Origin: Takakia lepidozioides
Lineage: Eukaryota > Plantae > Bryophyta
Direction: 5' to 3'
DNA: 64,000 nt
Assembly: GCA_030704615.1 (NCBI GenBank)
Contig: CM060732.1
Coordinates: 9,114,001 to 9,178,000, forward strand
In this document: in pieces, positions 8,285-59,775 of the stretch
Layout: every line of letters begins with the position of its first letter
Position numbering within the stretch: the stretch's first letter is position 1
Notes under the pieces: generated by a model
Database searches by the model: none
What the model saw: only the letters and a program-made list of their open reading frames with translations
Told to the model about the DNA's origin: nothing
Program-made: the position numbers and the translations under genes

Positions 8285-8994
8285 TTCTCCAAACCCTAGT
8301 TTCTGGTATTCAAACAGCTTTCAGACTTGAAATTCAACCCTACAATGACTGCCCTCAACTCATGCCGGAATAAATTCTGAAAATTGGAAAAACCCAATAG
8401 TAAGAAACAACGACAAACACCAGGACTTATGCATGACAGGTTCTCTTCAAAGTGCAGATGCCAACTCACCAAACATGTGATCAAAGAGAGAATGTGCAAC
8501 CCACCTACGAGGTCTGATCCTCGCGAGTCGCACCCAGACGATCCCACAACGGAGAGAGAGAATAGTAAAGAGCGATGAATGTTGGATATTCTATTCGTCA
8601 TCCGTTCGGCTCTTCATCCATCTTCCTGGACTGCCGAGTCCTTCACACTAGTCGCGCGGGAAAGAATGGAGCGCTTCTTTTAGGTCTTGCCTTACTCGAT
8701 TCGTTGTGGCAACTGCGCCTGTCTCTTGTGACGGTTAAATTGTGAGAGGGGTTTGTCGCAGACACAGTTTTGAAGTGGAGCAGAGCTGGTCGAGGCGACA
8801 GACTTTGCAAGGTTCTTTATGGTCGTTCCCAGCTTCGGTCTGCCTCGACGACCTGCTTCGGCTAGCTCATACCTACAACTCGGTTCTGGGTGTTGAAAAT
8901 CTGCTTTGACATTATGGGTCAGTAGCTCCGGGAAGCCTAAAGGTACATTGGCCGAAGGTTTCCTCGAATGTTTGTTGGGCTCGAGTGAGCAGCC
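8285..8994. promoter_or_regulatory. Putative bidirectional promoter/5' UTR region shared by CDKD and RAD17
   Basis: Divergent start codons at 8284(-) and 8995(+), about 710 bp apart. CpG-rich relative to the introns; AAACCCTA telo-box-like motif at about 8291. Confidence 0.6.
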
Positions 8995-17748: not shown

Positions 17749-18510
17749 TAAGGACACTGGATATAACCCATAAGGTAGTGGTATCTAGAAGTGTGCATTT
17801 AAGCAATGTGAACTGCTTAAAGGGTGTAGTGTCACAAAAATTACATAAGCAGAATAGCAAATGAAGCAACAATCACTTGTGCAAAGCACATAATTTTTCA
17901 ATCACAGATGTATTATATATGAATTATCAAAGTCAAAGTACATATTATCCCGCTTCTGCTCAGTAGGTCCCTCCTATAATGCCATATATTCATCCCTCAT
18001 ATGTGCCTAAAGGTGCCCAAGTGCACAAGGTGTGCACCTACACCTTTTCCAAAGAATTACCAAAACCAGGCCCTGCGTGGGCCCAGAAGTACCTGCCTCC
18101 CAACACGGAATTGAGCGCATCTACCTATGGAAGGACCCATAGCTTTCCCTGCATGGATGACGACCTATGCAAAATCTGACCATACACGTACAAGTAGGAC
18201 CCCTACGTGTTGACCTACAACTCCTCAGACATGGCCAACTGAGAACCCAAAACTAGCCGACCCTGTGGATAGACTCAACGGCTCCTTCATTTCTCGTTCT
18301 CCCGTAAACTGAAGCATGATAAAAGTGTGCACCAATATAGCAATATATAATCCATGCATCCCATTTGCATTCATGCCTGACTGCTGTATTAACCGGCCAT
18401 TGTCCCGAAAGACCAGCCTCCACTTTCAAAAAGGAATGGGGAATTTGAAATGAGATCACTAGGTGGCTGTGTAGTTAGCTTCACTAATCCACCATTAATT
18501 AAGCCCCTCG

Positions 18511-19756
18511 TACAGTGGTGGCATTCAATGACCGGGGGGGGGGAGGAGGAGGCAATCTCAAGTTGGCAGTGGGGAAGCCAAGAGATCCTTGTTCTCCCCT
18601 CCTACACCTATCTTGGCGTTGAGTTTTCCTCCAACTGTAATTGGGAAGCACATATTCAAAGAGTGGTTCAATCTGGCAAACGCAAAGCGCTGGGTCTCAC
18701 TAAATTTTTCCACTACAGAGGGATCAACTCTGAAGTAAAAAAAACCATGCTTTGCCGCGTTATCAGGCCGGCCTTGGAATATGCATCTGCTGTATGGGTT
18801 GATAACTCCAACCAGGCTAAGTCTCTTGAATCCATCCAAGTCGGGGTGCTCAAGGAGTGCATGTCAGCATGCTCCAAAACAGCTAATGTGGCTGTTCGGA
18901 GTGGGTTTGGCATTCACCCCTTAAGCTCCCGACGCGATGAATTCAAAATCAGATGGTGGGGTCAGCTGCAACGTATGGCTAATACCAGATATCCTAAGTT
19001 AATCGACTCTATATCTTGGAAGCAGGACCGCCCTGTCAAACAGGCTAAATCCTAGCGGAAAAGGATAGAAGAGATTTTCAAGGATCTGAATCTTAGTCCA
19101 CTAGCCATGACCCTGCTGGATAAATCTGGCTTAGAAGCTGAAGTTTCCGAAGCCATATCTATTGCCAGGAAATTGTCTGAAGAAAATGAAGTTAGGCAAA
19201 AAACTTCCCTCAACCTGTTTCCAGTCTGTGACATGGGTGAGGCCATCATGGATGACCTCAAGGGTCTACCCACCCTCGGCACTAGACTGAAATTCAAACT
19301 CAGGGCGGGTAGCCTACCTTTGAACAACAAACAGTCGCAGAGAGGAAAGGGGGATTGTAAGTGCCCGTTGTGTGGGCAACCTGAAGACAATATTCACTTC
19401 CTGATTCATTGTCCTGGGTACTCTCACCAACAGGACACCCTCTTCCATTCCATCAAGGAAATTGTGCATGTGCCTCTGTTTAACAACTTTGAAAATCTTG
19501 AGGCTGAGCCAAAAGCCCAAGCCCTTTTGGGGTCTAGCTATTGGGCAAATCACACACATCAGATTGATGCTTGTGTGAAGGGATTTCTGGAGGATATATG
19601 GAAATCTCGGATCACTGTTTATTCCAAGGTAAATCATACTACCGGCGTCAGCCCCTGACAAAGGTAGTTTCTGTCTCTTTATGTTCCGTTCAAACTGGGG
19701 GCGGGGTCAATGGCCACAAGGCTACGGCAAACAATGTCTTATGAGTACAATCTCTC
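18511..19756 (+). mobile_element. 5'-truncated LINE copy (RT C-terminus plus CCHC zinc finger), one in-frame stop
   Basis: YTYLGVEF...KQAKS*...LRAGSLPL...CPLCGQPEDNIHFLIHCP. Ends TTATGAGTACAATCTCTC. Same family as 1360-3691. Confidence 0.9.
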
Positions 19757-32769: not shown

Positions 32770-34333
32770 AAAGTCTTAAAGGTATCGGAAACGCCCAACT
32801 GAGTGGGAGGGCGAATAAACCTGCTAACGGCGAAAGAATGGGCCGTGGAGGAGCCATACGAACCCGAGTTTTTGCTTTACATGAGGAAAGTGGAAGGAGA
32901 AGTCGATAGGGAGCCGAGCCCAAATTGGAATATGGGAATCTTGGAGAAATACGAAGATGTAATGCCAGAGGATTTACCGAGCGGCTTGCCACCACGAAGA
33001 GGGGTCGACCATAAGATTGAGGTGGTGCCGGGAACGGAGCTGCCTGCCAAGGCACCCTACCGGTTGAGCCATAGAGAGTTGGTGGAGTTGAAAGAGCAGC
33101 TCAAAGACCTCATGGCAAAGGGATACATCCGGCCAAGTAAGTCACCTTACGGAGCCCCGGTGTTATTTACAGATAAAAAGGATGGGACAATACGGATGTG
33201 TGTCGATTACAGGGCTCTGAACAAGATGATTATCAAAAACTGGTACCATTTGCCAAGGATTGACAACCTCTTTGATCGGTTGGCAGACGCAAAGTATTTC
33301 AGCCGGATCGACTTGCGCTCAGGTTACCATCAGATTCGGGTGGCAGAAGGGGACGGAGAGAAAACGGCGTGCAGGACGAGATATAGCTCATACGAGTTTT
33401 TGGTGATGCCCTTTGGGTTCACCAATGCAACGCCGACGACTTTTAGCACGCTGATGAACATCCTCTTCCAGGAGTGACTAGATGACTTTGTGATCATGTA
33501 CATCGACGACATCTTGGTGTACTCGACAACAAAAGAAGACCACCTGGAGCACCTAAAAATGGTGTTCCAAAAGTTGCAGGAAAGGAAGCTCTATGCCAAA
33601 GCTTCAAAGTGCGAATTCGGGGTCACAAAGGTGGAGTTCCTAGGGCATGTGATTACACAAGATATGATCAAAATGGATGATAGAAATGTGAGGGCAATCT
33701 TGGACTGGGAACCTCCGACTTCGGTCCCGAGAGTGCGATCATTTATGGGACACGCCTCCTACTACCGAAAGTATGTGAGGAATTATGCCAAGATTGCGGG
33801 GCCGCTATCGGATCTCTTGCGTAAATCTAAGGTGTGGGTGTGGAACACCTTTTATGACCAAGCATTTGCTGAGTTGAAGCAGTGGATGGGGGAGACTCCC
33901 ATCTTTAAGATCCCGGAGTTCGACCGTCCATTTAAGATTCACATAGACGTGTCGGACTTCGCAATTGGGGGTGTTCTCATGCAGGATGGGCGTCCAGTCG
34001 CTTACAAAAGTAAGAAACTGAACGAGGTAGAGAGGCCGTGGCCTACGCACGAGAAAGAAATGAAGGCGGTGGTGCACTGCCTTGAGCTTTGGCGCCACTA
34101 TGGTGGTTCTAACTCGGTGAAGGTATTCACGGACAATGTCACGGTAAAGTATTTTTCCACGCAACCTAAGTTGTCCCCAAAATAAATTAGGTGGCAAGAC
34201 ACTTTGACATTGTTTGACGTGGATATCCAGTACAAGCTGGGACGAGACTATGTGGTGGCTGATGCTTTGAGTAGGAAGCAGCAGCTAATGTTGGTGTACA
34301 AAGGTGAGACCAAGTTGCAAAGGAAGATATGGA
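32770..34333 (+). pseudogene. Truncated Galadriel-like Ty3/gypsy pol fragment (RT-RNase H), older paralog of the 36037-43008 element
   Basis: [51 protein letters not shown]; premature stops at 33475 and 34183. Confidence 0.92.
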
Positions 34334-37667: not shown

Positions 37668-40600
37668 TCAACGTTTCTTCCGCTTTTGAGGTCGCCCTTC
37701 GAACGCTGCAACTGCCTCGGATGCGTTTCCCATTTCTGAGGCACGCACCCAAGATGCCTCCACAAGATGATAGCCCTTCCATTTGACGAGATACTCCGTT
37801 TCTCGGTTCTTGAACCTCCTCGACTTAAGTATTGCCTCCACCTCGTACTCAGGTTCATTTTCATGATCCAACAGCATAGGTGGCGGACGCAACACTTGCT
37901 GCCGATTCGGACGTGCTTCATCTTTGAAGTAAGGCTTCAAAAGGGAGACATGGAATACTGGGTGCACCTTGCTGTTTGCCGGCAGCTCCAATTCATACAC
38001 ATCCTCATTCATAACCCTCCGAATGCGAAAGGGACCCGCATACGGAGGTACGAACTTCGGACTCACTTCCGGAGGTAGTCGAAAATTCTTGATGTTCAAC
38101 CAGACCTCTGTGCCTGCCTCAAACTTCACTTCCCTCCGCTTCCGATTCGCCTGCCTTTCATACCGTTTCCTAGCTTTGGCAATGTTGTACTTTGCGAGCT
38201 TCAACAAACGCTCGCGTTCTTCCAGTACCGCCGCTACTGCCGGTTCCTCAACGTCCTGGGCGGCCCAACTTGTCGGCACCAGAGGTGCTTTTCCATAGAC
38301 CAACACAAAAGGGGAAACTCCCGTCGCGGAGTGTTCTGTGTTATTATAACAGAACTCTGCCGCGTCTAAGTGTTCCATCCAGTCTGATTGGTCTGCCGAC
38401 ACGTAATTCCGCAAGAATTGCTTCACTACGGAATTCACTCTTTCCGTTTGGCCGTCCGTCGTAGGTCGGAAGGCGGTGCTCATCTTCAGCCTCGTCCCCA
38501 TCTTCTTCCAAAGTGCTCTCCAGAATTTACTCGTAAACTTTGGATCGCGGTCCGAGACAATATCCTTCGGGACTCCATGATGCTTTAAGACGTGGGTGAA
38601 GTAAAGTCGCCCTGTCTCCTGCGCCGTTGCCGTCTCCTTGGTGGGGATGAAATGGGCCATTTTACTGAACCTATCTACCACCACCATGATTGCATCGAAT
38701 CCTTTTGACAGCGGCATAGCAGTCATGAAATCCATCGAGACGCTTTCCCAAGTCCCCTCTGGAATCGGCAAGGGTTGTAACAGCCCCGCTTGCTTTTTGT
38801 ACTCGCTCCGGTTTTGTTGGCATGTGGTGCATGTCTTGACATACTCCTCTGCCTCCTCCCTCAGTTTGGGCCAGAAATACTCTTTCTTCAAGAGTGCCGC
38901 AGTGCGCTTGGCTCCACCGTGGCCCGCAAGCGGGCTATCATGGCATTCTCTCAAGAGACTATCCCTGATCCCTCCCTTTGGCACATAGAGACGTTTTTGC
39001 TTATACCGGAGCAGTCCGTTTTGCAAGTGGAACTGCGATTTAGCCCCCATTCTCAAGTCCTGCATCACGCACTTTGCCAGCTCATCCTTCCGGCAAGCCT
39101 TCCGGATCTTCCTTTGGAGCGCCGTCTCGCCCTTGTACACCAACAAGAGCTGCTGCTTTCTACTTAAAGCATCGGCCACCACATTGTCCCATCCCGGTTT
39201 GTACTGGATATCCACGTCGAACACTGCCAAAGTATCTTGCCACCTAAGTTGTTTTGGGGACAACTTGGGCTGCGTGGCAAAATACTTCACCGTGACATTG
39301 TCCGTGAACACCTTCACTGGGTTGGAACCAACATAGTGGCGCCAGAGTTCAAGGCAATGCACCACCGCCTTCATCTCTTTTTCGTGCGTCGGCCACCGCG
39401 CTCCACTTCATTCAGTTTCTTACTTTCGTAAGCCACTGGACGTCCATCTTGCATAAGTACACCCCCAATGCGAAGTCCGATGCATCTGTATGAATCTCAA
39501 ACGGACGATCGAACTCCGGGATTTTCAAGACTGGAGCTTCCGTCATCCGCTGCTTCAATTCAGCAAAAGCTTGGCCACAAAATGTGTTCCATACCCAGAC
39601 TTTGGATTTACACAGAAGGTCCGACAGCGGCCCCGCGATCTTGGCGAAATTTCTCACATACTTCCGGTAATAGGAGGCGAGTCCTAGGAAGGATCGCACT
39701 CCCGGGACCGAAGTCGGAGGCTCCCAGTCCAAGATCGCCCTCACCTTTCTGTCATCCATTTTGATCCCATCCTGTGTAATCACATGCCCCAAGAACTCCA
39801 CTTTTGTGACCCCGAATTCGCACTTTGAAGCTTTGGCATACAGCTTCCCTTCTCGCAATTTCTGGAACACCCTTTTGAGATGCTCCAGGTGCTCCTCCTT
39901 TGTTTTCGAGTACACTAAGATGTCGTCGATGTACACGATCACAAAGTCATCCAACCACTCCTGGAAAAGGCTGTTCATCAGCGTGCTAAATGTCGCTGGT
40001 GCATTGGTGAGCCCAAAAGGCATCACCAAGAACTCATATGAACCATACCTTGTCCTGCACGCGGTCTTCTCCTCATCTCCTTCTGCCACCCGAATTTGGT
40101 GATAGCCGGAGCGCAAGTCGATCCGGCTGAAATACTTCGCTCCTGCCAACCGATCGAAGAGGTCGTCGATCCTTGGCAAAGGGTACCGGTTTTTTATAGT
40201 CACCTTATTCAGAGCCCTGTAATCGACACACATCCGCAGTGTCCCATCCTTCTTGTCTGCAAATAGCACCGGGGCTCCGTAAGGTGACTTACTCGGCCGG
40301 ATGTACCCCTTTGACATTAGATCCTTGAGCTGAGTCTTCAGCTCGACCAACTCTCTGTGGCTCAACCGGTAGGGCGCCTTGGCAGGTGGTCCCGATCCCG
40401 GTATCACCTCAATCTTGTGGTCAACTCCTCTTCGCGGTGGCAAGCCGCTTGGTAAATCCTCCGGCATCACATCCTGGTATTTCTCCAAAATCCCCTTGAT
40501 CCAATCTGGGCTCGGCTCCCCATCGCCTTCTCCTTTCACTTCTCTAATGTAAAGCAAAAACTGGGACTCGTGTGCCTCCTCCACGGCCCACTCCTTTGCT

Positions 40601-42154
40601 GACAGAAGGTTTATTCGCCCTCCCACGGATTTGGGCGTTTCCGACACTCGTAAAACCTCGCCACCATTCCCACATGGCAGCGTGACTACTCTCTTGCGGC
40701 CATCTATGACCGCTCCGGATTTGCTCAAAAAGGTCATCCCTAAAATGAGATCCACTCCATCGATCTCGCAGATAGTGAAGTTCTCACGTCCCTCCCAACT
40801 CCCCAGTTGAAGAGGAACATCAAACGCCAACCTTGTCGCCAACTGAGGTTCTCCTTTGGCAGAGCGCACCTCGATAGAGGCCCCCACGTCACTTGTCGGG
40901 AGTCCCAACTTTCGCGCCGCCACCGGCGTCATGAATGAGTGTGACGCTCCTGTGTCCACCAACAACGACACGTTAGTTCCGGATATTATCCCATCCACGA
41001 ACAATAACTGGCTCCCTTTACGTAGGGCGCCAGTTTCCTGATACAACTCACAAGAATAGTTGCCTACCTTGCAAGTCCTGGCGACTACCGCTTCCACCAA
41101 GCGACTGATGGTATCTTCCGACAGCTCCGTGGTCGCCCGAGTCATGTTCAATTGCCGGGGCTTCGTGCACTTCTTGGCCATGTGCCCGGGCTCCCCGCAA
41201 TTGAAAACACACTCCATCAAAAGTCGCCTTCTGTCCGCCATAAGCCGCTCCACCCGCTTTTCCTTTCGAAGCACCGGGTGCCGCCTTGACGTGTGAAGGA
41301 CCTCCCTTCGATTTCCACGTGCCATTTTCGCCGCGTGGCCTATCCCACTTCTTTTCCGGTCGGGAGGAGTCACCTTCCCGCCGGGTCTTCTTGTGGTTCA
41401 GCTCCGTACGGCCTTGTCTCTCACCCTTAGGGACATCCGAGAAACATTCAGCTCTCTCAATTGCCTCGTTCAAAGTCTTGGGTGGCTTCTCCTCCAACTT
41501 CCGCCTAGCCCATGGGGCCAGTCCTGCCACAAAGTTGAAGACCATTTCTGGTTCTGCCATGTCCGCGACTTCGAGCAACAACACATTGAAAGCCTGGACA
41601 TACCCCCGAATGTCGTCTGTTTGCTTCAAATTCCTCATCTTGTCCCGGGCAAGCCAGGATGCGTTGAGGGGCACAAACTGTCTCTTCATCAATTCCTTGA
41701 ACCCACTCCAGTTCAAGGTTTCCGGGCTTGGGCCTCGGTCGTGAAGGCGTTTCTGCCACCATTGTTGAGCATAGCCCCTCAAATAGGTGGGAGCCACTTC
41801 CACCCGATCCTCGTCACTCAACTTGGCCGCCCGGAAGTACTGCTCTAGCTCCAGGAGCCAGGTGTTGAGTGCCTTCCGGTTTCGAACGCCCTCGAAGGTG
41901 CCGGGTTCCTTAGGCTTCACCTTAAACTTTGTCTTAGTGGAAGTGGCATTAGCCGCCTTCAACACGTCTTTCAATGTCCCGCCAAACTGCGCCAACAACC
42001 CTTCCCAAAAGGCTGTCGGCATGGGAGGCATCTCTTGGTTTGTCGGAGCTCTCAAGGATTCCTCGGGCTCCGACTCCTCGGATTCCTCCCGCTCCTGAGC
42101 GGCCTCGTTTTCGGAAACATTCATCGCTTCCTCAAACGGCCGCCTCGGTGACAC
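37668..42154 (-). CDS. Gag-Pol polyprotein (gag, CCHC knuckle, aspartic protease, RT, RNase H, integrase, chromodomain) with about 3 single-base frameshifts
   Basis: [16 protein letters not shown]; [14 protein letters not shown]; [10 protein letters not shown]; YIDDILVYS; HTDASD; [12 protein letters not shown]; [23 protein letters not shown]; YAGPF; chromodomain [30 protein letters not shown]. Confidence 0.93.
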
Positions 42155-43008: not shown

Positions 43009-46000
43009 GGAGTTCTGTTACTAATCGACCACTGTTCAATGTCATGCTGGTCTGTACTGCGGGGGAACAATTTTGGGATCCGTTGACACAAGCGGGGAGA
43101 GAAAAGATGCACGTTATTAAGCAAGGTTGTTGACGAGTTTCATCGATACAATTGGAGCTGATAAAATTGTCCAAGTGTGCACGGACAATGCATCTAACAT
43201 GGTTAATATGGCCAATATTTTGATGGTACGATATCCTCATCTATATTACCAAGGGTGTGCTGCTCATATCTTTGATCTCCTTTTGGAGGATTGGGGAAAA
43301 AATCATGGATGAAACAGCTAGTAAAAATGACAAAGTCGGTTGTGACGTTCATCCGTACACATCACATCCCTCTGGCATTGTTTAGAAAGCATGAACCCAA
43401 ATACAGCCTTAGGAGCCCGGGTGAAACCCGTGTCAAGTTATTTTACCACTAGTGTGAAGTTAGCTAGGAGATAGCTAACTTTCATATATTGACATTTGGG
43501 ATTGACCCAAGTGTCAATCCAGGGGCCAATACATGTTTGGGCACTTGGCGTTGTTATCTTCACGGCAGATCGCGGTGGGCTCATCTTTCTCGAGTTGAGC
43601 CTCACCGCGTCTAGCTATGGCGCCGTAGTGTGGATTCCCCATGGCGTGGGGTGCACTTGGCTCGACTTAATATATGAGTGATGCTTTCATGTGCAAGTAT
43701 GTGAGTTCAAGAGAGCTTGTGTGCTTGTATCATTTCTTTCCTTATCACTCGAGAAAAATGAGCTCGAGTCTGTGAGTGCCAGGTTCAAGTTGTTTTGTAG
43801 TACTTGTGTTTTCATGAGAAGCGGTTCAGCCTAGAGTGCAGGGATCCGTGCATGAGCCTATCCACAGTGGATAGAGTGCAAAGGCGAACAGATTGCATGT
43901 TTACAATGGATAGAGAGGCGGGTAGTCTATGTTGAAGAGCGGCGTTGCATAGCTCAACGCAATGGCAACCAAGTTTGGGCTTCTAGTGTGAAGCGGAGGA
44001 GATGCTGGCCACGAGTGGGCGAACTGGTGGTCGTCTTCTTCAGTTGCAGGCCGAGTTAAGGAGCTGCAGGAATGTAAGTTGCGCATGGGAAGCTAGCATG
44101 TTGCAGGTTGGAGATGATATAATCAGCTCCAGGTATTTCTGTCCAAAACTAGTTGTTGCGGGTAGATGAGGAGCAGCTGAATGGTGGAGCTGCGAGGGGA
44201 TGCATCGCAGCCCGTTGGGAGCTTCAGCTCCAAGCTCATGAAGAGGTATGAGTGAAGAGAGGGGGCTGGTCCCTCTTGTGTGCAAATCAGAGCACTTGTG
44301 AAGCATGTGCTGAGTTGGAGTTTCAATCTGAAACTCAGTAGTGTAAGGGCTCTTGGAGTGGCAAGAGCGGGGCTGGAAGGACAGCAACGAGGCGCCCTAG
44401 AGCCAAGGGAGATGCATGAGAAGTGCAGGTGCACCAAGTTTGTAAAGGTGTGTATTTTCAGATTTGTTTTTGTGAGCTTCATGAAGAAAAGAGAGCTTGT
44501 TGGGCAGCATATAGCTTGCTTGTTGAGTTGGAGGCACTTCTAGTGGGCTGTGAGAGCTCAGGAGTGCAGGGCAACGGGGCTGATGGCTCCGCAAAAGCCA
44601 TAGCTCGTCAACAGCAGGTGCTGGAGCAAACCCCAGCTCGGGAAGAGCTCGGGAACGCGTGGGAACGCCCGGGAACTCATAGGAACTCGTTGGGAGTTCC
44701 AGGGAACGCAGGGAATAGTGGCCATGATGGGCCGTTGGGGCGGTATCACGAGATACCACGAGCCCAGGTCGTGGTGGTTGACCGTGACCGTTGGAAGTCG
44801 TGGTGCGGACACAACGGATAGGCACGGTGACCAGATCGTGGGGATGGCGAGCCGTGAAGGCTCGTGGGAATGGTACCATGGGGTATCAATGGGCAGCCCG
44901 TGGCCAACGAGTGCCTAGGGCGGGCCGTGAGGAGTAGTGGCGGTTGGAGCCACGGAAGGCCGCGAACAGGCAGAGTAAAAAAAAAAATTAAAAAAAAAAA
45001 AAAAAAAAAACTTTTTTCACTCGTTTCGTGGGACCTTGATGGGAGGCTGGGCTTTGAAGAACAACGGTTTTGAGCTAGCTGATCCGGCAGAAAAGTCGGA
45101 ATTGCCTCCCTGTTGCATTTTAACAAAGGGGATTACTCCCCTGCAGGTAATCTTTTCTGGTTTTCAGCCCAGTCCTTAATTATGGGGGAGACCAGCCTGC
45201 AGGTAATTCCTTTGGACAGAATGTTGTTGGGGCCTATATGTACCTCTATTTGCTCCATTTTTGAACCTTCAGCGAATGGTGTGGTTTCCTGAGGTGGTTC
45301 CATTCGGAGGAATGGCTGGTGGACGTAAGGAGGCACTGGCGTACCTTGTGGAGGGTTGCATGGGGCCTTGGAGGCCAAGTTTCATGAGCTCGTGGAGGGC
45401 GGTTTGAGAAGTGTCTATAGGATGTTCTCATGGTCATGCAAGTAAGAGAAGAGAGAGAAAAAAAAAAAAGGTGTTGGGATGAGAGTGAGCTGGGGATAGG
45501 CATTGCTTTAGTTTTCTCTTCCTCGTAGCTTTCCACCTTCTCTGTAGGCCGAGACCTTTCCGTAGGTGGAGGCAAGAGTCAGTCCGGGTTTGGGCTGGGT
45601 TGCAGGAGCGACACTGTGGAGTTGTTTTTGGTGTGGGGGAGTTGTTGTTTTCATTCTTGTGTTTGGATCCCCTCCACACCTGCATGCTTGATTGTGCGTC
45701 ATGCTAGTTTTGTGTGGGCGCTTGATTTTATAGGTGGTGGACTCAGGCTTGATCGCCAATCCCACCCTAGAGCATGTTGTCGATGGTGAGGCTGGGTTGA
45801 TGACTAGTCAGACCATCTTTGTTTCTCCTGTGGTGAGGTTGGAGGTGATGACCAGCCAACCATAGGAGTGCCTGCGGTGGATGCAGGTGCAGGTGCAGGC
45901 TATGTTAGGAACCTAGTATTCCAAACCATAAGCCGCATCAGGTTCTCTACTCGGTTACCTTGTGGAGAGGGGGTTAGAGACAGGTTCATGACCGGTTGGG

Positions 46001-46210
46001 TGTTAGTTTGTCAACACGGAGGTGCCACTAGTTGCTGGGGAAAGTACCGGTACAAACACTAGCGATACTAGCGGGTATACGAGACGGGGTGTGCGGTTTA
46101 GGCCACCTTCACCTCCTGTGTCTTCTACGGAAGGTTCTGATTCGGATTGTGAATCAGGAGGACTCACACCGGCGGTGCAAGTTGTTTCCTTACCATTGTT
46201 GTAGGACACA

Positions 46211-48100
46211 ATGGAGGAGATGTATGGAGCCACCAAGGGGCCACGAAGGTACTCTGGGGCGGTGGGCACCATCGAGTTGGATGACTTTATCCAAGAGTTT
46301 GATAGTTGGTGTGACTTGCAGCAAATGCGCAATCCACAACTGTTTACGTCTTTTATGGCATTGAAGGGGTTGTTTCAGCACCTTGAGGGACCGCCCATGG
46401 ATGATTACCATGAGTTTAGGCGGGGGCACGATGTTAAGATCGAGGAGTGGAGGATGTACTGGTCACCCGACTACGTCTCCATCACTAGAGGCACTAGAGG
46501 CACAAGGGCAACAGCCACACCGGCAGCTGCATCAGCAGCAGCAGCTACAACAGCAGCTTCCACGAGTAGTAGTGAGACTAGTGGTACAGCAACTACGACG
46601 TCCACCCAAGCTACTGTTGCACCAGCACCAGTGGCGGTGCCTGCCTTCAACCCTGTTGTGGAGTTCTTCGAAGAGTTGAGAAGGAACTACCAAGGGGTAA
46701 GGACAGAGAAGTTGAAGAGCTTACAAGAGTTCCAACGGAAGCCTACTGAGAGCTTGATGGAGGCTTTCACTCGCATGAGGCGCTTGATAAATGTAACCCA
46801 AGGGGTTACGGAGGTTCAGGTAGTCCAATTCTAGTATGGGATATTGGACAAGGAGCTGAGGAGAAGGGTGCGGGATGCAATTCTCCTACAAGCGGCCCAA
46901 CCTACCTTAGCAAATGTGTTTTTGCTGGCAGAGCGGATAGAGCTCAACATGGTGGAGGAACGAGTGGTCATGGTGGGATTTGCTAAGGAGGCACCACGGG
47001 GTAGTGGTGCTCCTAGCCAGCCACTACCTCAACGTGCTCAAGGCAGCAAGGGAGCTCAAGTGAAGCTCAGGGAAGGGCAGAAAGGACCTCAGATGCAGGG
47101 GTCTCTCCCTTCATTTGCTGGCCAACAACGGGCGGATGTGGTGTGCTGGACATGTGGAGGACCCCATGTCAAGAAGGATTGCCCGGAGGGAGGCAATGGT
47201 TTGGCACCGGCACAGCCTGCACAGTTGTAGTATGGCCATTGTGGCAAGTACGGGCATGGAGAAGCCCAGTGCTATGGTTTGCACCCTAAGTTGCGCCCAG
47301 GCCAGTTCCAAATGAACAATGGTGGCCGGGGGCGAGGTGGAGCAGCCCAAAGAGGACGAGGTGGCCAGGCACGAGGTGCAGGCCAAGGGCAAGCTCAACA
47401 TGGCCAAGGACATGGAGGTCAGGGTGGTGCCCAAGGCATGGCCAACCGGCTTCAGCAGCTAGAGCAAAGGTTCGCTGCCATGGCCACAGCTCAGGTGGTA
47501 CCGGTTCCAAGGCCGGATGGTCCACCTCCTGCTCCTGAAGGAGTAGACATGGGAGGCATGGGATTCATGTGCGGGGCAGAACTACCACTAGTGAGGGGTA
47601 CCACTACCACTACCACTATGGGTGGGGCACCACTACCACTAGTGAGGGGTGCCACTACCACTACCACTGTGGGCGGGGCACCACTACCACTAGTGTCAGG
47701 CAGCACTACCACTACCACTATGTGCGGGGCAGGACTACCACTAGTGCAAATGGAGTCAGCTGTGGTAGTGACTCGAGGAGCAACACGAGTTCCTGAGCCA
47801 CGGGGTGCGGAGGTGGAGTTGAATCCACAGCGTGGGGAGGCAAGCCGTCAGGCCAGGCTTCCTCAGTCATTCACATTGGCGGAGACAGTGTCGACGCCGT
47901 CCATGGCACCTAGTTCTCGCCCGACTGTTACCGAGGCGGAGGTTACTATGCCATTGGGGAGAGCCACACGGGCAGCACCACTATCTAGTGTTGCCGAGGT
48001 TACGGCAGCTAGTGTGCTGTTGGGGTGGCCTCATCTATGTGCCAGGCTCCATTGTTCTCAGCTACCATGATTGCGACGCCAAGGGTAAGACCAGCTGAGG
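46211..48100 (+). pseudogene. Gag-like region with two CCHC zinc knuckles, a Gly/Gln-rich tract and about 51-bp Thr-rich repeats
   Basis: LDDFIQEFDSWCD...LQEFQRKPTESLMEAFTRMRRLI; CWTCGGPHVKKDC; second knuckle *YGHCGKYGHGEAQC; in-frame TAG stops at 46832 and 47228. Confidence 0.75.
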
Positions 48101-48329
48101 TGTTCAGGCTGGCAGCTACACTCTGTGAGAGTGGGGAGGTTACTTCATCTTCTGCGGAGATAGTGGGAGGTGTAGTGCCGGAGGGATCCTCGGATTTAAG
48201 GGTCAAGACTACCACGGCGGCGCCATGGCAAGCTGCAGTTGCCAGGTTGATGGAGCTGCTAGCTAGGCCAGCCATTGAGCGCGCCATGGTGACACCTAGA
48301 GTTGTCATGTTAGACAACCAGGATGACAT

Positions 48330-48640
48330 TTGCTGTTTGAGTGGACCGGCAGGCAAGAGGTACCGGCCACTGCGAGTCTTGTTGGACTCGGGAGCTCAGC
48401 CATTGATGTTGGGCAGAGCTGCTATTGCAAGCTTGGGCCTCACGGAGGCGGATATGGAGCCGTGCCCTTTCCAGATACAGACATCTCTGGGAGGATCAGA
48501 GCAGGCTCGGGGCATGACACGGCGTGAGTTGGCTATCCGGCTTCACCCTGGATTTTTGGGAGGAGTCAGCTTCCTATAGGCCTGGATGGCAGTCAGGGGA
48601 GGGTCGGCGTGTGCAACTCCCTGTGACGTTCATAGGAGGA
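48330..48640 (+). pseudogene. Retropepsin aspartic protease remnant
   Basis: RVLLDSGAQPLMLG catalytic DSG motif; deletion/frameshift near 48530. Confidence 0.8.
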
Positions 48641-48988
48641 GTTGCGGTTGCCCAGCAAGGCAAGATGCCAACACTGGCAGCATTCACAGCTGTAGTGACT
48701 TGGCCTGAAGAGTTATTGGATGGCAACACTCATTCAGAGGATGTGTCACCTCCGGGAGAGCAAGATGACATGTATGGTATGGCGGAGTTGCCTGCCATGG
48801 TTGCTCACACTCCATTGTGGGGCTCGAGCAAGGATTTGCAGCGGGTTGCTGATTGTCGTGTGCAACAAGCCTGGGTAGAGGCTTTTGTACCATCAGGAGA
48901 GGAGGACAGTGCGGGGATTGCACCAGGACCACCTCAGTTGTCACCATTGGACACCACACCGATCATGTGGCAGTGTCCGGATGAAGAC

Positions 48989-49207
48989 ATTTGTCTTCTG
49001 GACTTGTTTGGCGGGATCAGTACCGGGTTGGCTGCTGTTTTATAGACAGGTGTACGAGTACGGCGTTACTTGTATGTGGAGAGGGATGCTCAGTTGCAGC
49101 AGTTAGTGGAGCCTAATGCCGACGAGCGAGAACGGGCTATGGGTTTTTCCACTGGGACCACGGCGGTGCCTTCTCTTTCTAAGGCATCACGTCGTCAGGT
49201 GTTGGGA
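48989..49207 (+). pseudogene. C5-cytosine DNA methyltransferase (DNMT3/DRM-like) remnant inside pol
   Basis: Motifs I-II ICLLDLFGGISTGLAAVL*TGVRVRRYLYVERD, directly followed by motifs IX-X EPNADERERAMGFSTGTTAVPSLSKASRRQVLG. Central catalytic part deleted. Confidence 0.8.
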
Positions 49208-49699
49208 TTATCAGCTTGGCTATGGCTGAGCAACGTAGAGTGCGGAGTGCACTTCCCTTGACGGTCTCTCTGCCTATCGAGATGGTACAGGCAGTGAGTG
49301 GGGGCGAGCCGGTAAGGACCACGGGGTGTAGACATCCATGGCACACGTGGGAGGTGCTCGAGGTTCAGAGGGAGTTGGCAGCCAAGGCGGCTGTGATGGA
49401 TGAGGTTGGGGATTCTTCTTGGGTTGAGGAGGTCCTCAATGATGAGATGATGGGGCAGGATGAGGCCTTGTCATTGACTGAGCAGGCAAGGAGTACTGCT
49501 CAAGAGGTTATGGCATAGCAACCACGGGACGCGTCCTCTACCTCTAAGTCTGCTGGACTTAAGGTTGCAGTTACGAAGGGCAATTGGGAGCCTGACATTG
49601 GACCCATTGTCACTAGAGGAGAGAGATGACGTATACGGCCGTTCTTGAGGCTTACAGGAATTGCTTTGCCTCTCGTGCTACGGTGGAGGAGCATGAGAG

Positions 49700-51417
49700 A
49701 CATGTTCAGGTTGTGCATCGACCGGGTTTGGTCAATAGGGATGTGGATGGATTGAGTTGCAATCCATGCACGAGCCAGCAGGATGACATTGGAGCTCGGT
49801 GGCATGGTGAGACGGACGAGAAGATGGTGCCAGGATGGCATGCATCTGCCTTTTTGTGTATCTTGGCATCGGGAGGCCAGGTTGGACCTACAACAGGGAT
49901 GACTGTAGACAGAGTGTCTGAGGACCCTGAGACTAGTGATGAGCCAGCTGGTGCCAGAGATATACATGAGGATTCGGTTGTGTTGGACTACCTCTGCACT
50001 GGAGACACGACAGCTAGTGTGACTGCCAAGGAAAGGGATCAGATCCTGCAACGAGCCAAGAGGTTCAAGTGGGAGGGGATACACCTACTTCGAGTGTGGG
50101 AGGATGGTCGGGTGAGGATTGTGCCTCACCCAACACAGCGTGCACGGTTAGTGCGGCATGCCCATGAGGAGTTGGGGCATTTTGGAGTGCGACGCATTCA
50201 TAGTTTACTGCAGGGGCAATATTGTGGCGTGGTATGCACAGAGAGGTGCAACAGTTCGTGGCTAGGTGCATGGTATGTGACAGGGTGCGTGCTTCATTCA
50301 ACGCCCCTACACCATAGTTGCATCCATTACCCATCATGGGATTGGGCTACAGGTGGAGTTTTGACTTCGCAGGGCCGTTGCCACTGACGATGCGCCACCA
50401 CAGATATGTGTTGGTGATGGTGGAGCACTTCTCCAAGTGGATTGAGTTGGTTCCATTGCCTGACAAGGCTAGTGAGGGGGCTGCGTATGCATTCCTGGAT
50501 CGTGTGCTTAGCCGATTCAGTGCTCCAGCTGAGGTACTCACGGACCAAGGGAGAGAGTTCTTGGGGGGAGTTTCAGACTTTGTGTGATAAAGCCTTGATA
50601 GACCACCGTACCACTTCTCGGGATCATCCTGAGGCCGATGGCTTGGCAGAGAGAGTGGTGCAGACAGTAAAGAGGGGTTTGCGCAAGTATGGCTTGCAAA
50701 AGGGACACCTAGGAGATTGGGATCTTCAGGTACATTGGTTAGTCATGGGCTACAGGTTCAGCAAGCAAGCATCACTTGCCTCCTTCTCACCATATTTCCT
50801 TCTCTTTGGCCAAGAGCCGGATTTTCCTGCATCTATTCGCAAGGAGGCTGCAGTAGTCCTCAACCTTGATAATCCGGATGTGTGGACACAAGCATGTGCC
50901 CAGCGGGCAGAGTTGTTCAAGAGAGTCATGCCTATGGCTTTTGGGAATCTTGCTATTGCCCAACACCGAGACACATTGAGGTATGTCACTATACGTGGAG
51001 GGGGATATCGGCCAGATGTTCGGCGTTTCCACCCTGGGGACTATGTGTATCTGCAGCAGACAACGCCTACGACCTTGGATGTCACAGCAGGACGTGTGAT
51101 TCTAAGGGTCAGGGAAGTGTTGCCTTCAGGAGTGTTAATTCTGGAGGGTCGAGATGGCATGGTATGGAAGGACCATGTGCATAATTGTGCGCTATGTCAC
51201 CTTCTACATGTGGATGGGAGGATAGATCCCAACCTTGCAGAGGTACCTGCAGGATTGCGTTGCATGCTATGTGGGCATGCTATGTGGGCATGCTCGTGGT
51301 GCCGCCACTATGCTGGTGTGTGATCGATGCTCAAGAGGGTGGCACATGGGATGCTTGACACCACTTCTTGATAGGGTTCCTGATGGAGATTGGTTATGTC
51401 CACACTACTTGGGATAG
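49700..51417 (+). pseudogene. RNase H tail, DDE integrase and C-terminal PHD finger (frameshifted)
   Basis: VVHRPGLVNRDVDGLS; HEELGHFG..CMVC; WSFDFAGP..VEHFSKW..TDQGREF..ADGLAERVVQTVK; CMLCG..MLVCDRCSRGWHMGCLTPLLDRVPDGDWLCPH. Confidence 0.9.
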
Positions 51418-54364
51418 TGGCAGTGGATATGACTAGTGGCAGCTCACAAGACATGGGAGGCCAAGCTCATAGGAGTCAATACCCAAGATCTCAGGCTCAA
51501 GTTCACAGGTTGCAAGACGGCGACTAACGATGGGGCAACTCTTGTACCCGGCCTCTTGATCTATTGAGTTTGAGTGTAGTAGGGACAGTGGTGGAGGACT
51601 TAGTGAGGCTATGGCCACTATCACATCTTGTGGCTACCTGGACTTAGAGGGACCTAAGCGCCAGCTAGGGTGGCGATTGTGATGGGCTAGTGGCTGCACT
51701 AGTGGTGGCTAGTGGCAGCCTAGTGGCAGCCTAGTGGTGGACTAGTGGCTGCACTAGTGGTGGCTAGTGGCAGCCTAATGTTGGACTAGTGGCTGCACTA
51801 GTGGTGGACAAGTTGTTGCACTAGTGGCAGGACTAGCGGTGCACTAGTGGTGGACTAGTTATAGACTAGTGTTTGGTGTGCACATGTGGTTTTGGACAGC
51901 GATGTAGTTGTGTAGCGATATGTATGCGCACGACAGCTGTCAAGTTATTTTACCATTAGTGTGAAGTTAGCTAGGAAATAGCTAGCTTTCATATATTGAC
52001 ATTTGGGATTGATCCAAGTGTCAATCCAGGGGCCAATACATGTTTGGGCACTTGGCGTTGTTATCTTCACGGCAGATCGCGGTGGGCTCATCTTTCTCGA
52101 GTTGAACCTCACCGCGTCTAGCTATGGCGCCGTAGTTGGATTCCCCATGGCGTGGGGTGCATTTGGCTCGACTTAATATATAAGTGATGCTTTCATGTGC
52201 AAATATGTGAGTTCGAGAGAGCTTGTGTGCTTGTATCATTCCTTTCCTTATCATTGTGATGGGCTAGTGGCAGCCTAGTGATGGACTAGTGGCTGCACTA
52301 GTGGTGGACTAGTGGTTGCACTAGTGGCAGGACTAGCGGTACACTAGTGGTGGACTAGTTATAGACTAGTGTTTGGTATGCACATGTGTTGTGTGGTTTT
52401 GGACAGCGATGTAGTTTTGTAGCGATATGTATGCGCACGACACCCGCTTTGCCACAAACTTTTTGATGGTGGATCGACTGGTGACTGTGAGGGCGGGTCA
52501 GGAACAGGTGATCATCGACCTTCAATGGGATACATAGGTGGGTACCTTACGCGACTCTCGTAAGTCCAAGTCTTTGAGCAAAAGTCGGAGGGTCCGCGCA
52601 ATCATTCGCTCCGACAATTTCTGGGCGAAATGTGCAATTTTTGTGTACATGGTGGAGCCGGTGTTGATTGCTTTGCGGGAGTTTGATGGAAAACAACCAA
52701 TAATGGGTAAAGCATGGTTGATATTGGAAAACCTTTAGAAGCAGGTGCAATCCTTGAGGCGTCCTCCATTCTCTATGGACGATGATTTGGCGGCAAGGAC
52801 CGAGGATGCATTTTACGATCACAAACGGATGGTTCATACGGACTTGCATTATGCAGGGGCCTTGCTGAATCCATTCTTGCTGGACAATACGGATTTGAGA
52901 GACAATGTGGATGCCAAAGCCGAGCTTGTACGGGTCATCATGCAACTCGCGCCCTTGAATATGGCAGAGCGAGCTTTGTCCGAGTGCCAGTGCTTCTCGG
53001 ATCGCCAGTGCTTCGCCGAATCCAAAAGCAATGAACATGTTGCCACATGAATGGTGGGATCTGATTAGAGCTGGAGCAAGAACGTTAGCTCCCATTGCAA
53101 AACAAATTCTTGCTCAAGTGTGCTCTGTCTCGTCCTGTGAGTGGAACTGGAGCAGTTACTCATTTGTTCACAACAAGATTCGCAATAGGTTGAATCCTGT
53201 CAGGGCTGACAAATTGGTTTATGTCTACACAAATTGTAGGCTACTGCAAGAGAGGACAACAAGTGACGCATCTGCATGGTACGAGAAGAATTTGTCGTCT
53301 GAAGAATCTGCCTCAGAGGTCCAATCTAGCAGCAATGATGACACCCACGCCGCGAGGGACTCCGACTCTGACGGTTGGGATGGGTCCGATGATGTCGGCA
53401 ATCCTCCACATGACCCATATGAATTTAATGACGATGATGCTGCAATGCACCCATCCTTCGATGACCTTGTTGTTGATGAACTGCAACATGGTGTCATTCC
53501 AATTGCGGACCCCCTTCCCCCACTGGAGCACACTCTCAACAATGAAGTTGAGGTCAACTCTCCCCCACCACAAGTTCCACGAACTGCGGGAGATGTGCAG
53601 GTCAAATCGTCGGATGATGACAACCTGCCGTTGTCATTCCTTCACTGAAATCCTGCCTCTGTGAACTGTGCTTCATCTCACGTCGCTCCATCTCATGTTT
53701 CTCTTTCTCAAGCCGGTCCATCCTATGCTGGTCCATCTAGTCTATCTCTCCCTCATGTAATTCCTTCCATCGCTACTCCGATCCTAGGAGATGCTTCTTC
53801 TGCTGCGGGACTTCTGCAACTCGAACGTGGTCGCACCTATTTTTTATTTTTTTTAAATCTGCGGCCACCCCCCTGCTGGTGGTCGCACATAATAAAAAAA
53901 AGAAAAAATGATGCGACCACCCCCTGTTGGCGGTCGCAGCTATTACTAACGTGCGTAGTCGTGATGACAGCGCACGCCCCAAGTGTGGAGGGGGGCTTAT
54001 AAGGCCTTCGAGGCCATTCTCTCCCTCACTTCTCTCCACACCAGGACTTGGTGGGCGATGGGATGCTGCATTCCTTGTCGCTGAGTTCGAGTGGAGAGGG
54101 GTGCTATTGGTTGGGTGGGGGGTATTTGTGGCCGTTGGTTTCTACGAAATCGATGTTGAGTACCTCCCGGGAAGCCCTCCTCTGGCACCCACATTTTTTT
54201 CATTGCACATTGCGTCATATCACTTAGAACTGTCGAGGGAGTGAATGTGCCTCTGGTACTTGGGGAGGATTCATTAGGGAGTAGGATTAGGTACGATTTA
54301 GGAGGGTTGGGAGAACATTTTTCTTAGCAAATACCTGTCGAGTAGGGGTAAGCCAGAGCCATAA

Positions 54365-56250: not shown

Positions 56251-59200
56251 CTACTCGATATTGCCAATGTCTCGCTGCAAAAGTGTCCGTACCTCACCAG
56301 GACCTAGTGTCACCTGGTGAATGATTTGGTCTCTTTTGGGATCACAATACATCGTGCACAAAAAGATGTAGTAAAGATGCTTGCAGGGAACCCATTTCCC
56401 TCTCTTTCCTAGAGCTTCCTCACGCATGCACACGAAGTCAGGACAGGTACACCCCGGAAAATTTCCCAAGGTCACCTGATAGGCCCTGTCGTGCAAAATA
56501 GACCCAGATGTGACCAAAGTGTAAACCCGTCCATACCCAGGTGAAGGTACTTCCATAGTTCCTGTTACCCGAGCCTGAAGTAGTCTGGCCGATTCCACCT
56601 TCGCATCGTGATCAGGCCCCGAAGCCACCCGATGCACTGTTTTGCCATTCCTTCTCATGGGATGCGAAGTATCGTCCAGAGGAGGTACCATAACAGCAAG
56701 GCCACCAAGAGTCGACGCCACAGATCGGTGCAGACGAAAGCCGACGTCCTCCAACTTGCCAATCTCCAGTGCTGTTAGGGAGGTTCCCACCCGCACTGGC
56801 CAAATGGTTGGTGGGGGAGGCTTAGCAATGCAGGAGTCGCGGACGGTACCATTCACACAGCGAGCCATATCGTCCGGGCAGAACCAGAATTTGTGCATCT
56901 TTGACTCCTTTGACATATATGGCCGAATCAAACCTGTGGACGTCGGAGCTGGAGTACCCGCCGAGCCTTTGGCTATCCTGGACTTACACTTTTCATAACT
57001 AATGGCCCTCACTGCAGCGCAGCCAACTCTAGACCCTGGAGTAGTTCGCTCGATGTGCCATTTGGAGTCAGCACAAGGTGACTCCTGCACTGCCCCCCTG
57101 TGGTCCTGCTGGAAACCCGCAATTACAGGGGTTGCAGGTAGCTCTGTGGAAGAGGAAGCACCAGCAGCCTCTTTCCTACTGGATGCCATGCTTTGTAGTG
57201 GAGAAATCTTGGGTACAGAGAAGTTGTCTCTGTCATGGCGATGTGAATCCCCATCTGATCCTGGAGGTGTATTTAGCTTGCGTTTGCAAGTCCCGAACCT
57301 TTCCTCTCCTTCCAGATGGGGCTCCCTTGATTGGAGAGGCGAGCCCATTGTGCACCTGTTCACTGCCTTTGCCATCTTCGTTGGATCCCCGGACCTTCTT
57401 GCAGCTCTCAGCATCAACTCTGTTGTATCTGGTCCCTTGCCCCCACATCGCCCCCTGAGGAAGTCACGATATCTTGTTTGTTGGGTTAGAGCTCGTACCA
57501 GATCATCTATTGTAGCAATGTACAGATCTCTTCCTGCTTTGCCAGATTGCTGCTTCCAGGCGGCGTGAACACTTTCTGCCAGATTGCAGGATGGCATGTC
57601 CGCAATGTCCTCAAGGGACATGTCCTATGAAAGGAAAATGAAAGAGCGTCATTCATGCAAGCGCGGACTGTTTTGGGAACAAGGAAAGAAATTGGGCACA
57701 TACAAGGGATTGCAGAGGTGAAAGGCAGCTTACAGTAGTCATGAAAGCCCCCCATTGCCTGTATCTGAAGTGCCAAAAGACCAACCAGTCTTCCAATTCT
57801 TTGACACCGTCCTGATCAGTAGCCCTTGACGAGAACCACCATGCTCTCACTATGTGGTACATGGTCTCAGCCTCTTCCATTGTAGTCACATTCTTGTACA
57901 TGAAGCAGAGCCTCATATGCTCCGCCTGCAGATCTCTTCTGATGCACCTCTTCGTATGTTTCTGCAGGGACTGAGTCCAGTGGAATAGACATGTGCGCTC
58001 CCTATTAGGCATGGGTACCTTTGGATCACCAGATCCAAAAACTCGGCGCACAGCGTTGAAGTTAGCCTGTGCACTATCCGCCATAAACCCGTTGAAATTT
58101 ATGCATGTATGTCCATTGGACTCCATGACTGAAAGCAAACAATTCCACATTATCATCTGGGACTCTGTATCTTCAGACTGCATGTCACAGATGGCAATTG
58201 TCATTATTCTTTGGTAGTTCGGGTCGTAAACATGGCAAGACATGGTTGTCCAGCCCTTCACTCGTTTGCAATGATCGAACATCATCCAGGTTTTCTCCAG
58301 ATCCCCCCCTTGTTGCATACATCTGGCCAGGCTGATGCCACTGCCCTCGCCCACCGTAGACATCTTGAACAAGTAAACCTTTGAAGACCCCTGACCCGGG
58401 AAGACGCTAGATTGGATAAAGTCATATTGACTTATGCACTTGAGCTCCATAATGTTGTCGATGGACCCTGTGTTTCTACCGCGCACTCTCAATGCATTCA
58501 CCTGATTCCTAATATTGGGGGAGCTCAACACGGAGAAGTGATCCATCACTGCATCCAAAGAAGCCCCCTCAAGTCTTGAGCTGCATTCGCTTCCCTGCCC
58601 AAGAATGTGCCTCTCTAGGAAACTTTTGCTGGCAGCCAGCGCTATGGCAGATGGTTTGGCTGAAGGGGACTTTGCAAACTCCAACACGACAAGCCCATGC
58701 GCCAACTCCACACTATCTCTGCAATCGCCGTGAGACACACGATGGTCGTGAGTCCCAAAATGAATGTAGGCTCGAGTCATGGTTTTGCAACGGTGAGTAA
58801 CGTAGTACATGCGAGCAGGGCAATGTGCAATGCAGGAGGGGGCCACCTTGCAGAACTTACAAACAAATGTATTGGCAGACGGTGGGGCACAGCCTGGGAT
58901 AAAAGGATTGTCGGAGAGTCCTTCCCACTCACTCTCATTTTTAGCACCGCTCTTCATGAAACGCTGGCAACTTGCATTCACACATCTCAGATGCCCCACA
59001 CAAACGCTCCTTCTGAATGTCAAGTTTACATCGTTGTGGATATTGGACATTTTGGTTCTGCACCATGGATGGCCATCATGCTTTTTATCCATTCCTTGCA
59101 AGAGACCTGAGAGGCCCCCAACACAAGTTGCAGGATTCAGCTCAAAGAGGATGTCACCGTCGAAGGAAGGTGGACGGAAAGGAACCCTTTTTGTTGCGAA

Positions 59201-59653
59201 TGAATCCCACAGTATCCCTGCGATCTCGTTTTTGGATCCTAGTTTTCCTGACAATGCTTTCAGATGTGGGATGACGCTAACGATTTCTTGAACATCGACA
59301 TCCCCTTCAGGAAGACTGTTCATGGGAGCCAATATTTCTGCCAATTCATCATCCGAGGAATCCGACAGTGTCACAAAAGTTGTTGAAGTGGTGTCCTTTT
59401 GCTTCACAGTCACATGCCGCTTTCCTTGAACGACAGAGGCAGCTGTCCTAGGAGTGACAATGGAGCCACCGGATTGTCTCCTTTTGCTTCGGAACACACG
59501 ATATTTTCCAGGAAGAACTCTCTGCTTGAACCTTGCTGCCAAAACATGCTCCTCCACCACAACAAAACCGTCATCTTCAACCGAGGCACTGAAAGGGCAA
59601 GGCTCTTCAGTATACTGAAACTCGGTGAAGGCCACGTCATTAGGAGAAGCCAT
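56251..59653 (-). CDS. Mutator-like (MULE) DDE transposase with N-terminal GCM-like domain and C-terminal SWIM finger. Exons 59653-57734 and 57624-56251 (about 1100 aa)
   Basis: MMFDHCKRV (D1), FMADSAQANFNAVRRVF (D2), TCLFHW (CxxH), NLAESVH (E); SWIM CTCPDF..CKHLYY; DGHPWCRT..RRSVCVGHLRCVNASC..C..HDH. Phase-0 GT-AG intron at 57625-57733. Confidence 0.85.
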
Positions 59654-59775
59654 CGGAAATTGTATGCACACAATGCTCAAACATGGCATCCACATCAGCC
59701 CATGTGGTGAATCCAGTGTACTTCAACGTGAATACATCACGCACAGTGTGGTGCCTTTGCAAATTAGCAGAGATG

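Follow-up and report, generated by a model that had tools for sequence, protein, structure and literature searches.

A 64,000-nucleotide stretch of the Takakia lepidozioides genome (assembly GCA_030704615.1, contig CM060732.1, positions 9,114,001–9,178,000 of the forward strand), referred to here as the window, contains at 43431–52442 a retroelement whose direct repeats are split into two parts, A and B. Repeat finding and self-BLAST of the window both gave the order A1-internal-B1-GC-A2-B2, in agreement with the original prediction made for this locus from the sequence alone (Table 1). The 3′ neighbour of A1 is the leader of the element and not B. A1 and A2 share 96.5% identity over 317 columns with one gap, much as the near-identity with a single indel had been described, and B1 and B2 are 92% identical over 181 columns, B2 matching the last 174 bases of B1. 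B1 is the longer of the two because it has additional CTAGTGG-type tandem units. No further copies of A or B were found within the window by self-BLAST and repeat search. The two bases GC separate B1 from A2, and the join reads GACA-GC-TGTC, the predicted palindrome, a 10-mer that occurs only once in the window (0.07 expected). The 4-bp duplication CCCG was also found where it had been placed, directly outside A1 and B2.

The coding parts of the element lie on the plus strand in the order gag with CCHC zinc knuckles, aspartic protease (PR), two remnants of a C5 cytosine methyltransferase (DNMT), the tail of RNase H, an H2C2 zinc finger, the integrase (IN) core rve and a PHD finger, and every one of them is interrupted by frameshifts and stop codons. 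The integrase is 60–62% identical to that of L001, an intact relative from a metagenome, and 63% identical to P0001, and the PHD finger is present in all close relatives. When compared with the intact polyproteins of L001 and of a second metagenomic relative, L005, the window copy is without the methyltransferase core, the end of the first open reading frame (ORF), the whole reverse transcriptase (RT) and most of RNase H. In tblastn, the methyltransferase remnants aligned to residues 773–941 of L005 ORF1 and to residues 838–903 of L001, with the residues in between missing, and the alignment to the RT-RH-IN-PHD protein of L001 began only at residue 454. The YxDD motif was absent in every frame of the window element translations. 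Because RT, most of RNase H and the DNMT core are lost and the frames are broken, the copy is dead and non-autonomous; it is an old, frameshifted, internally deleted Ty3/gypsy-type retroelement, a relic without functional consequence. The prediction that it has an rve integrase and no tyrosine recombinase was upheld, as domain searches of the window pieces and of genes from intact relatives gave no PF00589. The leader gave no Pfam family above the curated cut-off (best DUF6615, 20.1 bits vs 23.8) and no blastn match to any fetched relative locus, and may house an unrelated insertion. The linker between gag and protease carries at 47568–47746 about 3.5 tandem copies of a 51-bp unit, which encode a Thr/Gly-rich low-complexity stretch.

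Table 1. Positions of the parts of the split-repeat retroelement in the window.
Feature	Position	Strand	Remarks
Left target-site duplication CCCG	43427–43430		4 bases identical to 52443–52446
A1	43431–43747	+	Begins TGTCA (integrase end); would carry U3 (3′ part), R and U5 of the long terminal repeat made by reverse transcription
Stretch within A that can pair with leader bases 1–18	43577–43594	+	Predicted RNA 5′ end (self-primer)
AT-rich motif TTAATATATGAG	43667–43678	+	3′ of the predicted RNA start
Candidate self-priming primer-binding site CTCGAGAAAAATGAGCTC	43748–43765	+	Directly 3′ of A1; complementary to 43577–43594
Long leader	43766–46204	+	2.4 kb between the primer-binding site and gag; A-rich tract 44974–45010
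gag with CCHC zinc knuckles, stop-broken	46205–47305	+	Weak Retrotrans_gag match; tblastn with L001 and L005 gag
Aspartic protease (LLDSGAQ)	48256–48576	+	Asp_protease_2 E 0.002; tblastn with L001 and L005
C5 cytosine methyltransferase remnants	48539–49258	+	Motif I DLFGGISTG and C-terminal ERERAMGF kept, core deleted
RNase H end and integrase H2C2 zinc finger	49692–50222	+	Integrase_H2C2 match; RT and most of RNase H missing upstream
Integrase catalytic core (rve) and C-terminal region, frameshifted	50225–51320	+	rve E 3.7e-11
PHD finger at integrase C-terminus	51226–51414	+	PF00628 E 5.8e-9
Decayed polypurine tract CTAGGGTGGCGA	51665–51676	+	Adjoins B1; counterpart of GTCTAGGGGGGG or GTCTGGGGGGGG in relatives
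B1	51677–51935	+	Putative U3 start; terminates in CGACA (integrase end)
Palindrome GACA-GC-TGTC at the B1/A2 join	51932–51941	+	Proposed internal attachment site from the element's two ends
A2	51938–52253	+	Repeat partner of A1
B2	52254–52442	+	Fused directly to the end of A2; joint would be U5 end to U3 start
Right target-site duplication CCCG	52443–52446		Same as left

The relatives were collected with the integrase end of the protein. With the integrase C-terminus as query, 825 protein representatives matched at E ≤1e-10, the best of them 63% identical, and a second search returned a large IN-PHD group, often with PF00145, which includes proteins of Haematococcus lacustris and Volvox reticuliferus. 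The DNA taken for nine IN-PHD genes gave ten loci, L001–L010, of which L001, L003, L005 and L007 are from metagenomes, L002, L008 and L010 from H. lacustris and L009 from V. reticuliferus. Scanning of JGI metagenome contigs with a narrow alignment of the IN-PHD region added 80 loci; 60 independent loci make up the metagenome family described below. The nearest of these show about 69% DNA identity to the window over the integrase, and they belong to related families and not to the window's own. In the intact L001 and L005, gag-PR-DNMT is followed by RVT_1-RT_RNaseH-Integrase_H2C2-rve-PHD, and PF00145 is present in ORF1 of both and in many relatives. By its domains, the window element is assigned to a green-lineage clade with the polyprotein gag-PR-(DNMT)-RT-RNaseH-IN-PHD.

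The junction was found to be a conserved site that defines the ends of the element, as had been proposed. The sequence CGACA-(G/A)C-TGTCA is present in nine relatives (L001, L002, L003, L005, L007, L008, L009, L010 and the metagenome family). It lies 110–700 bp 3′ of the IN-PHD stop codon in L001–L003, L005 and L007–L010, with flanks that are unrelated between lineages, and about 225–290 bases past the matched region in the metagenome family, where it is recognisable in about 25 of the 80 loci. The central bases in independent metagenome copies were GC in 9, AC in 8, AT in 4 and GT in 4, a spread that fits the transition decay of GC in old copies.

The integrated forms of the relatives were examined at both ends. 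The right end of the H. lacustris element at L008 is B1 (39 bp)-GC-A2 (410 bp)-B2 and that of the V. reticuliferus element is B1 (52 bp)-GC-A2 (676 bp)-B2, and B1 and B2 are identical in each. L002 and L010 contain the same 410-bp A followed by the leader instead of B, so the end of A is a fixed boundary, at which either B or the leader begins. The full A1-internal-B1-NN-A2-B2 order was seen in 11 metagenome loci representing 10 independent insertions, with A of 290–315 bp and B of 175–180 bp, sizes near those of the window. Among the right ends of the 60 independent metagenome loci, 29 were B-NN-A-B, 27 were B alone and 4 were cut short or irregular (3 BA, 1 BB), and the B-alone loci were A-internal-B wherever the left end was visible. 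Duplications of 4 bp were found outside TGTCA… and …GACA in 13 of the 16 copies with both ends, in both forms, where 1.5 are expected; a duplication was counted when at least 3 of 4 positions were equal, and L035 read by eye raises the count to 14/16. As these duplications flank exactly the ends TGTCA… and …CGACA, it would be these ends that the integrase joins to the target.

The original prediction had itself raised the possibility of a single event at this locus, a deletion plus a tandem or nested insertion, or of a misassembly; the deletion would have removed half of the 5′ long terminal repeat (LTR). The degenerate and internally deleted state of the copy and the lack of further copies in the window would suit such an event, but the layout recurs, with the same junction motif and with 4-bp duplications outside A1 and B2, in two chlorophyte genomes and 29 independent loci of the metagenome family, which refutes the single event and leaves it a negligible probability. 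The A-internal-B-GC-A-B layout is thus a property of the family.

The two integrated forms were also compared with each other. Averaged over the metagenome copies, B1 and B2 resemble each other about as closely as A1 and A2 of the same copies do, and this, along with the identity of B1 and B2 in young copies, fits the renewal of both repeats in every cycle. The terminal branch lengths of the two forms are alike (medians 0.075 and 0.067, p 0.34), and on the tree the forms are interspersed, with 16 changes compared to 18.5 with shuffled labels. Therefore, A-internal-B arises repeatedly from the other form and does not make a lineage of its own.

The flanks of the repeats were inspected for signals of reverse transcription. 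A run of at least five G adjoins the first base of B1 in 55 of the 60 metagenome loci, and it is GGGGGGAA in Haematococcus and G9 in Volvox; L005 and L003 have a G-run at the corresponding place as well. The counterpart in the window is decayed, and the tract ATCTAGGGTGGA of the metagenome locus L037 is nearly the same decayed form. At the other side, a motif of the class TCTAGAAAAAC stands directly 3′ of A1 in related copies. In the window, the first bases after A1 (43748–43765) can pair with 43577–43594 inside A with an RNAduplex energy of -24.9 kcal/mol, a value which none of 300 shuffles reached. Similarly, TCTAGAAAAACTA of the metagenome family pairs with TTAGTTTTTCTAGAA, which lies about 28 bases 3′ of a TATA box, and in Haematococcus ATCTCAAGCT after A pairs with AGCTTGAGAT inside A. 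Leader-to-A complementarity is therefore present in three lineages with different sequences, over 10–18 bases and with shuffle fractions of 0/300, 0.003–0.013 and 0.007. These values refer to a search over the last 200 bases of A; the last 110 bases alone gave weak, non-significant pairs. The maintenance of pairing while the sequences differ between lineages would be a signature of self-priming as in Tf1/Sushi. A tRNA primer-binding site (PBS) was rejected, as TGG is not found after A1 in either the window or the metagenome family; in Haematococcus, TGGTCCGCGCGG sits 12 bases further on past the end of A.

With a G-run before B1 and a self-complementary site after A1, U3 would begin with B, and U5 would be the last part of A. 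The repeat of reverse transcription would then be B-GC-A, and the A2/B2 joint would be that of U5 end to U3 start. The original prediction had taken the LTR as A plus B, with B being a U5 moved to the inside, no PBS or polypurine tract (PPT) and the termini templated by the B1-A2 junction. The conserved junction agrees with this arrangement, and so do the lack of a tRNA-type PBS after A1 and of a strong PPT before A2 in the window. Its denial of a PBS was right for tRNA, and the tRNA-independent priming that it implied is retained, but it overlooked the complementary bases 43748–43765; the denial of a PPT is true of the decayed window copy and not of the family. With B following a polypurine tract, and thus beginning U3, and with a self-complementary PBS after A1, the arrangement with a relocated U5 is very improbable. 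The motif at 43667–43678 read as TATA-like in that prediction lies 3′ of the predicted RNA start, which also counts against the arrangement and makes the role of the motif uncertain; a poly(A) signal is one possibility.

These features together suggested a scheme that we hold to be rather probable, in which the LTR of reverse transcription is B-GC-A, the integrase uses the palindrome inside it and the integrated copies are permuted. Plus-strand synthesis would begin at the G-rich PPT just 5′ of B and minus-strand synthesis just 3′ of A, at the site that would pair with the element's own RNA 5′ end in the Tf1/Sushi manner, and the cDNA from an ordinary cycle of reverse transcription would have a B-GC-A repeat at each terminus. 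The integrase would ignore the outer ends of these repeats and use TGTCA… and …CGACA, which stand back to back inside the repeat (the GACAGCTGTC site). The cDNA ends would be joined, A end to B start, either in a 2-LTR circle or by end-joining after a cut, and the opening of one palindrome in the joined-end cDNA would yield A-internal-B-GC-A-B, the replication-competent form and the form of the window copy. A-internal-B would result instead if half-sites in the two repeats were used, or the one site present in a 1-LTR circle; U3 could not be regenerated from this form. Both forms would be inserted through a 4-bp staggered cut.

Several observations weigh against this scheme. A symmetric 2-LTR circle predicts the mirror permutation A-B-GC-A-internal-B equally often, and none of the roughly 21 left ends visible in the metagenome family had its A-B-NN-A-leader order. 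The symmetric version of the model conflicts with this absence, and an asymmetry must be assumed; for example, the intasome might form on the repeat that is first made double-stranded, a bias that is speculation on our part. The A-internal-B copies could instead be later B1 × B2 deletions, against which the branch lengths argue weakly. The PPT of the window copy is decayed, no good TATA box was found 5′ of its predicted RNA start, and no leader/A complementarity was found in L005, L003, L007 and L009, where the end of A is not fixed; L001 yielded a single candidate pair. Furthermore, the RNA ends and the joined-end intermediate are deduced from DNA sequence.

The missing mirror form is explained more simply by a replication of the DIRS/Ngaro type with an integrase replacing the tyrosine recombinase, an alternative that we nevertheless consider unlikely. 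The RNA would start within A1 and end within B2 or past it, the outer portions of A and B missing from it would be restored off the B1-GC-A2 bridge, and the integrase would trim at the half-sites. A-internal-B-GC-A-B and A-internal-B would result naturally, with no mirror form, which matches the counts. The layout equals that of PAT/Ngaro/TOC1-type elements (PMC5890265), and the head-to-tail units in L005 and the internal-B-GC-A-leader forms in Haematococcus are also in its favour. This alternative has, however, no role for the G-run that adjoins exactly the first base of B or for the pairing between leader and A, which is located precisely where A ends. In addition, if B2 were copied from the parental B2, a drift between B1 and B2 would be expected, yet the two are identical in young copies and keep an A-like similarity in old ones.

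The anatomy of the element was compared with that of described systems. In Klebsormidium nitens, the Gypsy element KnitGypsy-Dnmt3 carries a Dnmt3-like domain within Pol (de Mendoza et al, 2018; PMC5890265), and its repeats are arranged as A-coding-B-A-B in the DIRS style with domains of Gypsy type (PMC5890265, Fig. 4c legend), so that the combination thought to be undescribed in the original prediction had already been noted. Compared by description, the window element is similar to it in having DNMT remnants between protease and integrase and the same repeat layout. It differs in its host, which is another streptophyte, and in being non-autonomous, and the paper reports the layout alone, without junction sequence, PBS/PPT or mechanism (PMC5890265). 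No K. nitens proteins were among the matches listed for the integrase C-terminus, IN-PHD and DNMT-bearing ORF1 queries, the last of which gave three matches, and KnitGypsy-Dnmt3 was named in only one paper (PMC5890265) of the literature searched. Thus, the layout and the domain combination are already known, and the window copy is one more member, decayed and from a different host. The anatomy, namely an internal palindromic attachment site, a tract before B, a putative self-priming site after A and two integrated forms, was not found in the literature searched.

PAT, Ngaro and TOC1 of the DIRS order encode a tyrosine recombinase and make no target-site duplication. The window family shares with them the A1-internal-B1-A2-B2 order and an internal junction that contains both termini, and differs in its rve integrase, its 4-bp duplications and an RT, RNase H and IN of the Ty3/gypsy type. 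With Ty3/gypsy elements, the intact relatives share the PR-RT-RNaseH-IN order, rve and a CCHC gag, of which gag, PR, IN and the last part of RNase H are left in the window copy. The short target-site duplication is likewise common to both, and the positions of the putative PBS and PPT fit a repeat B-GC-A. The two complete terminal LTRs of Ty3/gypsy elements are missing; both in the window and in 29 related loci, the element begins with A alone and finishes with B-GC-A-B. Self-priming is known in Tf1/Sushi and has been predicted for Tcn1 (PMC6317226). These elements resemble the window clade in that no tRNA PBS is present and the bases after the 5′ repeat are complementary to a site near the predicted RNA 5′ end, whereas Tf1-type elements are chromoviruses with ordinary full LTRs and the window clade has permuted LTRs and an integrase ending in a PHD finger. 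Retroviral integrase (prototype foamy virus, and HIV-1 in vitro) cleaves the palindromic LTR–LTR junction of 2-LTR circles (PMC1180852, PMC1905944), so that a CA-NN-TG palindrome made from the two element ends is an integrase substrate in retroviruses. The retroviral palindrome arises only from the joining of linear DNA ends and is a side route at most, whereas the palindrome of the window clade lies inside every LTR, and the outer LTR ends are unused in the proposed scheme.

In textbook LTR retroelements, linear cDNA is integrated by the tips of the LTRs, and split direct repeats are commonly taken as the mark of tyrosine-recombinase retroelements. The clade would break both rules, as a Ty3/gypsy integrase and target duplications occur in it together with a split-repeat layout. 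LTR finders that require two full LTRs would miss or misannotate such elements, and a classification by repeat layout alone would place the clade under DIRS. A wider proposal, which we put forward tentatively, as possible and somewhat short of probable, is that the whole DDE-integrase clade, from chlorophycean algae to a bryophyte-like streptophyte, has shifted its attachment sites from the LTR tips to an internal palindrome. Productive integration would then need joined-end cDNA and a palindrome-opening integrase, and A-internal-B copies would be frequent dead-end by-products. If true, the old “circle junction as att site” model would be realised in nature, and in an obligatory form. Whether an integrase can use a palindromic junction within joined cDNA ends could be studied in this clade, which has young copies in Haematococcus, Volvox and Klebsormidium.

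Some of the relative loci showed further rearrangements. The L001 contig closes on itself, as gag leaves one end and resumes at the start, and L005 (1–17788), which is flagged circular, comprises 2.2 head-to-tail units of the intact element, one joint having an intact B-GC-A and the other (near 3999) having lost B and the palindrome between two CGCGA microhomologies. Tandem arrays, extrachromosomal forms or effects of the assembly could account for both. L002 (12863–22984) and L010 (24610–34505) are apparently near-identical segmental copies with duplicated integrase fragments and head-to-head B|B joints, and in both, two A-leader segments of some 1.1 kb, 100% identical, are inverted relative to each other; owing to these rearrangements, no clean left end was obtained from L002 or L010. 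Host exons, in L010 those of an RB-like gene, are fused to integrase fragments in the gene models of these two loci. At L008, the upstream part of the Haematococcus element is broken up by long satellite arrays of 18-bp period, which occur in either orientation (4027–5283 and 8444–9990). In L007 (1–9982), a called gene of 3676 residues precedes the IN-PHD gene and would be an exceptionally long ORF of the gag-pol type.

The rest of the window is rich in transposons, with a chromovirus, a hAT remnant and other repeats. A nearly intact chromovirus lies on the minus strand at 37668–42154, where three long ORFs encode gag, protease, RT, RNase H, integrase and a chromodomain, and a second, more broken copy of its RT is found on the plus strand at 32803–34185. 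The best named relatives of this chromovirus are in the liverwort Riccia sorocarpa and in Closterium, at 40–51% identity. Just right of the split-repeat element, an ORF with a C-terminal dimerisation domain of the hAT family (53031–53648, plus strand) is probably a hAT transposase remnant. On the minus strand, 56251–59695 contains two long adjacent cysteine-rich ORFs of 680 and 456 aa with no Pfam match, whose appearance is that of an uncharacterised transposase or of a gene from a large DNA transposon; for the product of 680 aa, the gene collection had no record. Two similar ORF fragments on the plus strand (3153–3809 and 18450–19055), without a Pfam match and with common motifs such as ILVLPSYTYLGVEFSSNCNW, are copies of one repeat, probably the C-terminal part of the RT of a non-LTR element.

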